Shown here: positions 4,999 to 63,435 of the stretch, piece by piece
Layout: each line of letters opens with the position of its first letter
Position numbering within the stretch: position 1 is the stretch's first letter
Origin: Salpingoeca rosetta
Taxonomy: Eukaryota > Protista > Choanoflagellata
Direction: 5' to 3'
NCBI GenBank assembly: GCA_033442325.1
Contig: JAWQFM010000035.1
Span: 404,597-468,596 of the forward strand
Length of the DNA: 64,000 nucleotides
Program-made: the position numbers and the translations under genes
Notes under the pieces: generated by a model
Seen by the model: only the letters and a program-made list of their open reading frames with translations
Told to the model about the DNA's origin: nothing
The model's database searches: none

Positions 4999-6851
4999 TG
5001 TGTACGTCTAAGTTCTGGGCGAATGGATACGCGATGCCACGTGCCATGTTTTGTTGTGGATGACCTCAGTTAACCACGCTCACGCTCACGCTCACCACCA
5101 CCGCCACAGCGACACCTCATCACCACCACCACTCACTCACTCACACTCTCTCACTCACTCAAAATCACACTCTCTCATTCTCTCTCACTCTCATTCTCTT
5201 TCCCTTCCTCAACTTGCATCATGACCCCTGCAGGAAGAAAGCGCCGCGCAAGTTGTCGCGATCGGAAGCACAAAGCGCTCGTGACAGTGCGGGCCCCAGC
5301 CCCTCAAAGACGGTGGCACAGAGCCTTGCACACATGCGCGTAGGCCAAAATAGCAGCGGCAGCGGCGGTGTTGGTGGCAATGGTGGTGGTGGTGGTGGTG
5401 GTGGCAACACATTTGCCACACACTCGACGAATAGCAGTCATGCCACTGCAAGTCAGAGTACCAGTGGTGGTCGTGCCGCCAATGGATTGCCTTCAAGCAC
5501 AATGGGAAGCGGTGGTGGGACGACGACGACGACGATGATGATGCCGGCAACAGCGACGACGGCGGCGAGCGTGGCCACGTCGCAAATGATGAGTGGCGTT
5601 GGCTTCAACGGATATGCCATCAACCCGACTGGCCTCGCCACACACACGACGCTGCCTTCGTCCTCATCTGCAGGGCACACGTCGACAACAGCGACATCAG
5701 CACACTCCCTGCCCATGATGAGTGGCCTCTCGTATCGCATCACTGGTGCGCAGGATATCATCACCACCGCTGCCCCGCCCTCCACCGCCACCTCCACCGC
5801 CACCACATCTGCCAACAGCTTTGCTGTGGGTGCTGCACAGATGCAGCTGCACACGGCGCAGCACCCTGGATTGCCGCACTTTGGCATGGTGGCTGCAACA
5901 GCATCGTCGCCTGCGTCCGCAATGGCAACACCATCAACCAACACGTCGGCACCGACGCCAACGTCAAGCAGCTACCACCACCACCAGCAACATCAGCGTG
6001 CATCCACGCCTGGCAGCGGCAGCAGCGCCGCGCGCGGGTGGGATGCGCAGATGCTGCTCATGCCGCAGGGCCCTGCGTCCACCATCACGACACCTCCACC
6101 AGGCATGATGACCGATGCGGGTCTTCTACACGGCACGACGAGCGGGCCCAACACGGCGCTGGGCACGGGCAGCAACACCCCAGCAGGACAACAGACGCCA
6201 ACACACCTCGGCGGCGTTGTTGGCGGTGGCAGTAGTGGGATGCTTGGACTGCCGCGAATGGGCACGTTTTCGACGCCGTCACCGCTGCCAACGGGCTCGA
6301 TGGAGGGCGTGACGTTTGCACGCGCACAGACGCCTTCAGCAGCGCTGTCGACAGGTCCACCAGCACCACAACAACACCACCACCACCAACAACACTACCA
6401 ACATCAACATCAGCAGCACCATCAACAGCAGCAGCACCATCAACAGCAGCAGCGACAAGCAAGTGCAACCAACGGTGGTGGCGGTCGCGGTGGTGGGCAA
6501 GTTCTGCCACCCCAATCGTCGCACTTTCCATCCATCAACACATCGCACCAGCAGCAACCACAGCATCAACCACAGCAGCAGCGGCAACCGTTGATCGGGT
6601 CCGTGCAGGGTGTGGTTGGTAATGGTACCAGCAGCAGCCGCAGCAGCCGCAGCGGTGGTGGTGGTGGTGGCGACACGCAGAAGCAACCTGCAGATGACAA
6701 TGTCAGTGAGCAGCAGCCCCTCATCACGCTGTCGACGGCCAGCACCACCACTGCCGCACCAGCAGCGAGTACTGCACCCACGTCGCTTGCCTACACAGTC
6801 ACGTCCGCATACAGCGCGACTACACACGACGATAGTGGCCAGACACAATAA
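2053..6851 (+). CDS. FHA + forkhead transcription factor (FOXK1/2 / fungal Fkh1/2-like), about 6 exons
   Basis: FHA domain AYAKLQGEDFTYYIQTLSVTLGR…AISRLHAKIEYN…LGKNGVYING…|TAIQIGDVCFYFLLP. Forkhead KPPYSYAVMIAQ|AIHKHPERRQTLAGIYKYIMDSYPYF…GWQNSIRHNLSLNKNFVRVTR…GKGAFW (about 4438-4850). GT-AG introns; long Q/S/T/G-rich C-terminus; TAA at 6849-6851. Confidence 0.92.
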
Positions 6852-59983: not shown

Positions 59984-62900
59984 ATGGTAAGTGCACCTGC
60001 CTGTGCCTGTGCCTCTGTGCGTGCACACGAGAGCGTGCTTGGGTTTGTGTGGGTGTGTGCAAGCGAGTGCATCCACAAGCATCCCGCTCTTCTTTATGGG
60101 AGGGCGATCTCAAAGACATGTGCATGCACACATGCATATGTGCACATGTGCACATGTGCACATATGCGTTTTCCTCGCGTCGACGATTCTACTGCCACCT
60201 TCGGCGGACTTGTGTGCATGCTCGTTTTCCTCCTCTTCCCTTGCCACCAATGTTGATCCTCTCCTCCACGATTGCACACTCTTCCCTCGTTGTTTTTTTC
60301 GCCTTTGCGTCTGCCAACTTGTCTTCATCTGCGATCGCTTTTATGCGCACGCACGTGGTCCACCACCACCCAATATGGCATCTGAAAACCGATTTCCTTT
60401 TCGTCCCCCTCTTTTCTCTCACCATCCTTCTCTTCTTGACCGTTCCCCTTCTTCGCTCCAACGCACACACAAACATGCATCAATGGCTGAATCCATCCAC
60501 CACACCACCCACTCACTCACACACACACTCACACACGCTCGACCCCTACCCCTGCCCCCTTTCTCTTTCCAAACTCAGGTGCATTTCACAGTGAGCCAGA
60601 TCCGTGAGATCATGGACAAGCGTCACAACATCCGTAACATGTCTGTGATTGCCCACGTCGATCACGGCAAGTCCACCCTCACGGACTCGCTCGTGTCCAA
60701 GGCCGGTATCATCGCCGGTGCCAAGGCCGGTGAGACCCGCTTCACGGATACCCGTGCCGATGAGCAGGAGCGCTGCATCACCATCAAGTCCACCGCCATC
60801 TCCCTGTACTACGAGCTTGACGAGAAGGACATGGTCTTCGTCAAGCAGGAGAGCCAGGGCAACGCCTTCCTCATCAACCTCATCGACTCCCCCGGGCACG
60901 TCGATTTCTCGTCCGAGGTGACGGCCGCCCTCCGCGTCACCGATGGCGCCCTCGTCGTCGTTGACTGCGTCTCCGGCGTGTGCGTGCAGACCGAGACTGT
61001 GCTTCGCCAGGCCATTGCCGAGCGCATCAAGCCCATCCTCTTCATGAACAAGATGGACCGCGCTCTCCTCGAGCTCCAGCTGGAGAAGGAGGACCTCTAC
61101 CAGACGTTCCAGCGCATCGTCGAGAGCGTCAACGTCATCATCGCCACCTACGGTGACGACGACGGTCCCATGGGCCCCATCCAGGTCGACGTCGCCAAGG
61201 GCACCGTCGGCTTTGGCTCCGGCCTCCACGGCTGGGCCTTCACCCTCAAGCAGTTTGCCGAGATGTACTCTGCCAAGTTTGGCATTGACATTGAGAAGAT
61301 GATGTCCCGCCTCTGGGGCAACCAGTTCTTCAACGCCAAGACCAAGAAGTGGCGCAAGTCCGAGGGCGACGGCTTCCAGCGTGGCTTCAACATGTTCGTG
61401 CTCGACCCCATCTACAAGCTCTTCGACGCCGTCATGAACTTCAAGAAGGACATGACCGCCAAGCTCATCGAGAAGCTCGACATCAAGCTCCAGGGTGACG
61501 AGAAGAGCCTCGAGGGCAAGCCCCTCATGAAGGTCATGATGCGCCGCTGGCTCCCCGCCGGTGAGGCTCTCCTGCAGATGATTGCCATCCACCTTCCCTC
61601 CCCCGTCACCGCCCAGGCCTACCGTATGGAGATGCTCTACGAAGGCCCCCACGACGACGAGGCCGCCCTTGGCATCAAGAACTGCGACCCCGAGGCCCCT
61701 CTGATGATGTACATCTCCAAGATGGTCCCCACCTCCGACAAGGGCCGCTTCTACGCCTTCGGCCGTGTCTACTCTGGCAAGGTCGCCACCGGCCTCAAGT
61801 GCCGCATCATGGGGCCCAACTACGTGCCCGGCAAGAAGGACGATCTCTTCATCAAGAACATCCAGCGCACCATCCTCATGATGGGCCGCTACATTGAGCC
61901 CATTGAGGACGTCCCCGCCGGTAACATTGTCGGTCTCGTCGGCGTCGACCAGTTCCTCGTCAAGACCGGTACCATCACCACCTCCGATGCCGCCCACAAC
62001 ATGAAGGTCATGAAGTTCTCCGTCTCCCCCGTCGTCCGCGTCGCCGTCGAGGCCAAGAACCCCTCGGACCTCCCCAAGCTCGTCGAGGGTCTCAAGCGCC
62101 TTGCCAAGTCCGACCCCATGGTCCAGTGCATCATCGAGGAGTCTGGCGAGCACATTGTTGCCGGTGCCGGTGAGCTCCATCTCGAGATTTGCCTCAAGGA
62201 TCTCGAGGAGGACCACGCCCAGATCCCCATCAAGAAGTCCGAGCCCGTCGTGTCCTACCGCGAGACCGTCTCCGAGATGTCCAACATCATGTGCCTCTCC
62301 AAGTCCCCCAACAAGCACAACCGTCTCTTCATGAAGGCCGAGCCTCTCGCCGAGGGTCTCGCTGAGGCCATTGAGGACGAGAAGGTCACCTCCAGGCAGG
62401 ACCCTAAGGAGCGCGCCCGCTACCTCGCCGACAACTTTGAGTGGGACCTCACCGATGCCCGTAAGATCTGGTGCTTCGGCCCTGAGGGCACTGGCCCCAA
62501 CGTCGTCGTCGATGTCTCCAAGGGTGTCCAGGTGAGCGCGACTGTGCTATTATTGTTGGATTTTTTTTTTCGTCAATGCTGTTGTTTGTCTTGCGGCCAG
62601 GCCTTCGACTTCACAGTGGTTTCCCTCTCCTCCTGATGATGCACATCATTGATTTACATCTGACGTGCGCCTTGTATGGCGTATGGTGATGCTTTATTCA
62701 ATGTTAAACACTCTAATTTTTTGCTGAGGGGTTGTTGTTATCCGCCATGTTCCTCCACCTCTTGTTGTTCGGCACTCACACGCGGCATCATCATCCCGCT
62801 CATTTGCACTGCAATTTCACTCACTCAAAACCCCATCTCCTTTCTCCCGCTCCCTCTCATTCACACAGTACCTGAACGAGATCAAGGACAGCGTCGTCGC

Positions 62901-63435
62901 TGGTTTCCAGTGGGCCACCAAGGAGGGTGTGCTCGCCGACGAGAACATGCGCGGCATCCGCTTCAACATCTACGATGTCACCCTGCACACCGATGCCATC
63001 CACCGCGGTGGCGGCCAGATCATCCCCACCGCCCGCCGCTGCATGTACGCGTGCTGCCTCACCGCCTCTCCCCGCCTCATGGAGCCCGTCTTCCTTGTCG
63101 AGATTCAGTGCCCAGAGAACGCCATTGGTGGCATCTACGGTGTCCTCACCCGCCGTCGTGGTCACGTCTTCGAGGAGAACCGCGTTGCCGGTACCCCCAT
63201 GTACAACGTCAAGGCTTACCTGCCCGTCATGGAGTCCTTTGGCTTCGACTCTGCCCTCCGCGCCGGTACCGGTGGCCAGGCCTTCCCCCAGTGCGTCTTC
63301 GATCACTGGCAGGTGCTCACCGCCGATCCTCTCGACCCATCCTCCATTGCCGGTCAGATTGTCAACAAGTCCCGTACCCGCAAGGGTCTCTCCCCCGAGC
63401 CCTTCCCTCTGGACAAGTACTACGACAAGCTCTAA
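59984..63435 (+). CDS. EEF2: Eukaryotic elongation factor 2; exons 59984-59986, 60579-62531, 62869-63435
   Basis: M|[38 protein letters not shown]; [12 protein letters not shown]; NKMD; diphthamide loop [18 protein letters not shown] (His codon at 63001). Strong C-ending codon bias typical of a highly expressed gene. Confidence 0.98.
62628..62732 (+). ncRNA. Intron-encoded box C/D snoRNA with an 18S rRNA guide
   Basis: Box C TGATGA 62634-62639; D' CTGA 62660-62663; internal hairpin gtgcgcc/ggcgtat; C'-like GTGATGC 62686-62692; box D CTGA 62724-62727; short terminal CC/GG stem. Guide AAACACTCTAATTTTTT (62706-62722) is complementary to the conserved 18S segment AAAAAAUUAGAGUGUUY. Confidence 0.82.

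Follow-up and report, generated by a model that had tools for sequence, protein, structure and literature searches.

Vertebrate EEF2, the elongation factor 2 gene, hosts the intronic box C/D snoRNA SNORD37. A second described system is Afu-298 (AM921940), a box C/D snoRNA of ~90–100 nt that was cloned from A. fumigatus, where it is intergenic; it gave a northern blot signal and was classed as an orphan when first published (PMC2377427). In "The fungal snoRNAome", Afu_298 is assigned to family CD_41, which is reported throughout fungi apart from Saccharomycotina ("no trace") and has paralogs in Leotiomycetes (PMC5824354). Here, our analysis of the window (the whole 64,000-nucleotide stretch of Salpingoeca rosetta DNA under study) indicates that nucleotides 62630–62731 probably encode a genuine, apparently unannotated and ordinary box C/D snoRNA, which would serve as a guide for 18S A868 and as the counterpart of Afu_298/CD_41.

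The host of this candidate is the S. rosetta EF2 gene. Exon 2, used alone as query in a protein search (651 codons), is 100% identical to the NCBI entry "elongation factor 2 [Salpingoeca rosetta]", in agreement with the EEF2 intron named as host in the earlier note. The reading frame stops after VDVSKGVQ and picks up at 62869 in exon 3 (Table 1). The host intron is the last of the gene, and it is "intron 2" provided that exon 1 holds just the ATG. It contains no tandem repeats, by comparison with the CACA arrays of EF2 intron 1, so the observation that it is free of microsatellites was correct. In addition, the intron is GC-poorer than its surroundings, with a GC content of 0.47 for the intron and 0.41 for the snoRNA against 0.61–0.62 for the exons.

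Table 1. Features of the EF2 locus and of the predicted snoRNA, in window coordinates.
Feature	Position	Strand	Description and basis
EF2 exon 2	60579–62531	+	651 codons, C-terminal letters VDVSKGVQ; open reading frame and splice sites read
Host intron, last of EF2	62532–62868	+	337 nt, GT...AG; donor GTGAGC, acceptor CACAG
Conserved block, 5' part of host intron	62539–62587	+	may be separate from the snoRNA
Predicted mature box C/D snoRNA	62630–62731	+	~102 nt; boxes, fold, sub-threshold Rfam match
Terminal stem, 5' strand CUCC	62630–62633	+	partner GGGG 62728–62731; three G-C and one G·U
Box C UGAUGA	62634–62639	+	sequence
D' antisense element UGCACAUCAUUGAUUUACAU, orphan	62640–62659	+	20 nt; best match 9 bp, chance level
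Box D' CUGA	62660–62663	+	sequence
Internal hairpin between D' and C'	62664–62685	+	8 bp, 6-nt loop; MFE and centroid structures
Box C' UGAUGC	62687–62692	+	sequence
D antisense element	62704–62722	+	62707–62722 pairs with 18S 865–880; 62704–62705 pair with A882–A883
D+5 nucleotide T62719	62719	+	partner 18S A868, the predicted 2'-O-methylated base
Box D CUGA	62724–62727	+	sequence
Terminal stem, 3' strand GGGG	62728–62731	+	partner CUCC
EF2 exon 3	62869–63435	+	translation ends DKYYDKL, stop

The candidate displays the features of the box C/D class, namely C and D boxes with a terminal stem, internal D' and C' boxes, and an antisense element of at least 10 bp, and each of the four boxes lies where the earlier note had placed it. 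Box C carries a C at the R position of the RUGAUGA consensus. The predicted fold has a minimum free energy of −31 kcal/mol and is more stable than shuffled sequences (z = −2.5). Two features count against the assignment as a snoRNA: the terminal stem adjoining the boxes comprises just 4 bp, and the distance from C' to D is 31 nt, which leaves a long spacer before the guide.

The guide upstream of box D was compared with the rDNA of the species' own genome (18S of 2100 nt). Nucleotides 62707–62722 form a perfect 16-nt Watson–Crick complement of 18S nucleotides 865–880, AAAAAAUUAGAGUGUU, with a duplex energy of −18.6 kcal/mol, and the target sequence is the same in four of four sampled rDNA copies. 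The complementary 18S segment anticipated from the letters alone is therefore present, and it is the conserved A-run segment that had been named. The pairing length that had been proposed holds only in part. Because the S. rosetta 18S reads GUGUUCAA and not GUGUUUAA, A62706 faces C881 in an A·C mismatch followed by two more base pairs, instead of a clean 19-bp duplex. G62723, adjoining box D, is unpaired, and the antisense element begins at the second nucleotide upstream of D. T62719, as the fifth base upstream of D, pairs with A868, the fourth A of the A6 run in the 18S, which makes this nucleotide the predicted methylation site, as had been claimed.

Among CTGA-anchored rRNA complements of at least 12 nt on both strands of the 64-kb window, the match described here spans 16 nt, and all the others are CA/GT microsatellites of 12–13 nt. 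Furthermore, the pattern of guide plus D box is single-copy in the 55-Mb assembly, where the other matches carry two mismatches. Since the genome holds no second exact match and the window no rival anchored complement except microsatellites, the guide can hardly be explained by chance.

In the EF2 gene of Monosiga brevicollis (CH991569.1), an intron occupies the same codon position, after VDVSKGVQ, and it contains an ortholog of the predicted snoRNA (positions 5894–5980 of our extract L010) that is, as far as can be told, unannotated. Read 5' to 3', this RNA consists of AACGUAUC, A, AUGACGA, 11 nt, GUGA, 10 nt and UGAUGA and then, beyond an intervening stretch, of CACUCUAAUUUUUUU, C, UUGA and GAUGCGUU. 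The two RNAs share the host gene, the intron position, the guide core CACUCUAAUUUUUU and the C' box, which in M. brevicollis is UGAUGA; M. brevicollis also keeps an 8-bp terminal stem, a C box with one mismatch and a box resembling D. By contrast, the M. brevicollis RNA is 87 nt long, has non-canonical boxes (AUGACGA as C, UUGA as D), and carries an unrelated D' region. Its guide has seven U instead of six, and the formal D+5 position counted from UUGA falls on the third A rather than the fourth; together with the non-canonical boxes, this counts against the favored assignment. When the two introns are aligned, no stretch of identity is longer than the guide. As judged from these sequences, retention of guide, boxes and stem while the rest has diverged is the classic pattern of snoRNA conservation, and it provides the conservation in a relative that the earlier note had proposed as a check. 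Plant snoZ182 and human SNORD99 and SNORD74 gave weak matches to the M. brevicollis RNA, which arise from boxes and U runs and not from the guide, and were rejected.

These data bear on the notion that the locus is a chance combination of motifs or a decayed, unexpressed relic. The weak 4-bp terminal stem of the S. rosetta RNA speaks for it, whereas the retention of guide, boxes and stem in the orthologous intron of so distant a choanoflagellate, together with the lack of any comparable anchored complement elsewhere in the window, speaks against it and leaves it scarcely credible.

We next consider the relation of the snoRNA to described families. At the gathering threshold, Rfam returns no match anywhere in the window, and a permissive scan gives one relevant match, a full-length alignment of 62632–62729 to RF01507 (Afu_298) with E = 1.9 and a score of 20.7 bits, which lies below the gathering threshold of 40 and likewise counts against the assignment. 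The Afu_298 consensus ends with AAACACUCUAAUUUUUUGaUGA, which presents the guide in the same register as in S. rosetta. The D guide ACACUCUAAUUUUUU, separated from box D by one spacer base, amounts to 18 nt identical to this consensus, and the shared guide AAACACUCUAAUUUUUUG selects the same 18S adenosine, so that the A-run site is predicted to be guided in fungi as well. No guide for the A-run site appears in the snoRNA tables of N. crassa and T. rubrum.

The fungal members and the S. rosetta RNA also differ. Fungal Afu_298 members contain the D' element UUUUUAACC-CUGA, a box C of GAUUAAU and a box D of AUGA, none of which is found in S. rosetta. All 12 fungal-type sequences have UUUUUAACC followed by CUGA, and S. 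rosetta has GCACAUCAUUGAUUUACAU there. Moreover, Afu-298 of A. fumigatus is intergenic, whereas the S. rosetta snoRNA is intronic. On this comparison, the S. rosetta RNA is best described as a new entry in a known class, a predicted functional equivalent of Afu_298/CD_41 that scores below the Rfam threshold and lacks its D' element. It would thus be the Afu_298/CD_41 counterpart in function and possibly by descent; the identical guides could also reflect convergence on the same conserved target.

The likeness to SNORD37 is confined to the location of an intronic box C/D snoRNA inside an elongation factor 2 gene. The SNORD37 model does not match the S. rosetta snoRNA even at E ≤ 10, and SNORD37 has a 28S guide, whereas neither guide of the S. 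rosetta RNA pairs with 28S. EF2 thus appears to have hosted a guide RNA already in choanoflagellates, one other than the vertebrate EEF2 snoRNA. Three animals were examined in this respect, the sponge Oscarella, the coral Acropora and the acorn worm Saccoglossus, and their EF2 genes contain neither the A-run guide nor an Rfam snoRNA at threshold. The EF2 gene on a TARA contig, 87% identical, has no introns.

Environmental sequences supply further homologues or analogues. A metagenome search with the pattern CACTCTAATTTTTT N{1,4} TGA yielded at least 120 stretches, 111 of them non-redundant among the matches listed. Among these 111, the guide is accompanied in 14 by a terminal stem of 5–10 bp and a C box containing no more than one mismatch, by comparison with one in a control using reversed upstream sequence. 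The same listed matches include 12 of Afu_298 type, two of which overlap the strict 14 and 10 of which are additional, and the three of this type that were tested pass the Rfam threshold with 44–75 bits. Altogether, snoRNA-like genes with the same guide number at least 24 on metagenome contigs of diverse eukaryotes. On one contig (L087), a plant-type snoZ43 lies 400 nt downstream of the guide-bearing snoRNA. On five contigs from large genomes, the ~80-nt snoRNA is the sole block common to all five, the other blastn matches being short shared repeats. Other copies lie in or beside the genes for RPLP0, WDR12/Ytm1 and RNA polymerase II; the WDR12/Ytm1 protein, encoded on a GC-rich marine contig (L025), is no more than 44% identical to any named protein.

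The register of these sequences is informative about function. A real RNA might deposit no methyl group and serve chiefly to chaperone pre-rRNA, or as a base-pairing factor, at the junction of h21/ES6 and h22. The long guide (16 + 2 bp) and the degenerate C and D boxes of the fungal members would suit such a role, as would the outcome of our search of the accessible literature, which contained no experimental mapping of a methyl group at the A868 equivalent. However, T6 plus 1 nt plus (C/A)TGA is the register in all 14 strict metagenome sequences, and T6 plus 1 nt plus NTGA is likewise fixed in 12 of 12 fungal-type sequences, which is expected of a methylation ruler and not of simple pairing. 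Because the distance from guide to box D is invariant in about two dozen independent sequences, we favor a methylation ruler and regard a pure chaperone as quite improbable.

The same sequences address whether the site is peculiar to S. rosetta. To our knowledge, budding yeast 18S carries no 2'-O-methylated nucleotide between A619 and A796, which fits the lack of CD_41 in Saccharomycotina, and in human 18S we know only of Cm797 and Um799, shortly before the A run. The idea of a lineage-specific guide, confined to S. rosetta or its close relatives and directing an 18S methylation not known before, could draw on these maps as we know them and on the Arabidopsis map, from which the site is also missing, as well as on the searchable literature, where "snoRNA" together with "Salpingoeca rosetta" retrieves nothing relevant and no snoRNA survey of this species. 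A full-text search with the guide sequence itself retrieved only 18S PCR primers. The Arabidopsis RiboMeth-seq list gives A623, then A780, followed by A796 and A801 (PMC8053127). In the S. rosetta sequence, the A run lies ~45–52 nt upstream of the snR53-type site UUA*GCAUGG, which places Arabidopsis A780 outside the run. Against lineage specificity stand Afu_298, with the same guide and register, the occurrence of CD_41 across fungi except Saccharomycotina in the survey cited above, and the many unrelated environmental eukaryotes that carry the guide in different host genes, one of them with snoZ43 nearby. The suggestion of a possibly unreported, lineage-specific site was thus not upheld, given the same guide and register in Afu_298, in CD_41 across fungi and in at least 24 metagenome genes, and we give it very little credence.

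The D' element behaves differently from the D guide. Scans of 18S, ITS, 5.8S, 28S, U1, U2, U4 and U6, run with and without G·U pairs and with one mismatch allowed, returned only chance-level matches of 9–10 bp. The best of them comprise 9 bp at 18S 107–115 and a 5.8S match, GUGUGAAUUG, with four G·U pairs; the best matches contain several G·U pairs or are off-register. For either guide, a 28S complement of at least 10 bp that is free of multiple G·U pairs is absent. The corresponding region of M. brevicollis is 11 nt of different sequence. In view of these chance-level matches and the non-conservation, we treat the D' element as an orphan, probably inactive or directed at a target specific to this lineage, which agrees with the earlier finding that this guide has no recognizable target, now extended over rRNA, ITS, U1, U2, U4 and U6. 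A double guide, in which D' (62640–62659) would also methylate a target outside rRNA, U1, U2, U4 and U6, such as a tRNA, U5, a snoRNA or an mRNA, derives some plausibility from the perfect CUGA of D' at a normal 20-nt distance from box C, the good C' box, and the hairpin that joins D' and C'. This possibility seems unlikely, as nothing above 9 bp is found in the RNAs scanned and the M. brevicollis RNA does not share the element.

For the favored reading, a guide for A868, the established box C/D mechanism suggests the following course. The RNA would be released from the spliced EF2 intron through exonucleolytic trimming, shielded by Snu13, Nop56, Nop58 and fibrillarin assembled at the C/D and C'/D' kink-turns. 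In the pre-ribosome, the D guide would anneal to 18S nucleotides 865–883, and fibrillarin, the gene for which is present in the S. rosetta genome, would methylate the 2'-OH of A868, the fourth A of the conserved GAAAAAAUUAGAGUG run. EF2 being a translation-factor gene, the guide may be co-expressed with ribosome demand.

If confirmed, 18S Am868 would provide experimental support for the target of Afu_298/CD_41, a family first published as an orphan, and would represent a widespread rRNA methylation that the standard maps of yeast, human and Arabidopsis lack. Tentatively, the fourth A of the universally conserved 18S GAAAAAAUUAGAG run may even be an ancient 2'-O-methylation site, served by one snoRNA lineage in fungi (budding yeasts excepted), choanoflagellates, plant-like organisms and several uncultured protists, and unmapped because S. 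cerevisiae, human and Arabidopsis have lost it. In that event, S. rosetta, which is genetically editable, would be the nearest relative of animals in which to test the role of the site. The general understanding of how snoRNAs work is unchanged. Choanoflagellate snoRNAs are almost unexplored, and the predicted RNA contributes one well-supported example from this sister group of animals.

The host intron also contains similarity outside the snoRNA. Downstream of the snoRNA, the intron is no more similar to the M. brevicollis intron than shuffled sequence is. In the 5' part, by comparison, the conserved block listed in Table 1 aligns locally to the M. brevicollis intron with a score of 30, against 17.3 ± 2.9 for shuffled sequences, none of 300 of which scored as high.

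The box C/D snoRNA predicted in the last EF2 intron of S. rosetta has an ortholog in the same intron of Monosiga brevicollis. Its boxes are non-canonical (C AUGACGA, D' GUGA and D UUGA), and its guide carries U7, by which the formal target moves one base, to the third A of the 18S A run. The D' region of the M. brevicollis snoRNA weakly resembles SNORD74 and SNORD99 (GGACAUC). Our comparison of the two introns reveals a further similar block 5' of the snoRNA, with a local alignment score of 30 against 17.3 ± 2.9 for shuffles, none of 300 of which reaches 30. Words common to both blocks include CGACTGTG, CAATG and TTTGTCTT. This block may serve in splicing, regulation or processing. In their 3' parts, the introns of the two species are not similar.

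Corresponding choanoflagellate features and environmental metagenome contigs with the same 18S A6-run guide
Feature	Sequence	Positions
5' intron block, S. rosetta	Window	62539-62587
5' intron block, M. brevicollis	L010 (CH991569.1)	~5804-5852
Orthologous snoRNA, M. brevicollis	L010 (CH991569.1)	5894-5980
Environmental locus, snoRNA in or adjoining host gene	L078	2748-3740
Environmental locus, snoRNA in or adjoining host gene	L025	3724-4830
Environmental locus, snoRNA in or adjoining host gene	L054	340-1921
Environmental locus, snoRNA in or adjoining host gene	L053	

The environmental snoRNAs lie in or beside differing genes, namely those for ribosomal protein P0, WDR12/Ytm1 (in two related, GC-rich marine contigs) and the largest subunit of RNA polymerase II, indicating that the guide either changed hosts or arose repeatedly. 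Among the matches listed, L030, L044, L052, L061, L068, L070, L074, L075, L079, L099, L121 and L123 are of the type of Afu_298 (RF01507), a fungal family with an identical D guide; all of these also conserve another antisense element, UUUUUAACC, which precedes CUGA. Their box C is GAUUAAU or UGAUUAU and their box D is AUGA; these atypical boxes may explain why the founder, from Aspergillus fumigatus, was published as an orphan. Among the environmental snoRNAs, a compact version of 72-76 nt, with the stem ugcaacc ... ggttgca, is the only block common to all five of the metagenome contigs L048, L081, L086, L103 and L107, which are AT-rich and full of repeats and may derive from animals or other large-genome eukaryotes. 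One of the five contains an ORF that, by eye, resembles a Tc1/mariner-type transposase fragment.

In a quick search of the S. rosetta assembly, U5 snRNA (RF00020) gave no match and the U6 match spans model positions 1-68 only, both probably reflecting the limited sensitivity of that search. The 18S of this species is long (2100 nt), and its genes lie ~2-20 kb from the contig start in at least eight contigs (C23, C35, C36, C4, C7, C19, C24 and C9), including the window's own, C35, with fragmented copies in C7, C19 and C24. These positions suggest that the rDNA units are dispersed and possibly subtelomeric.
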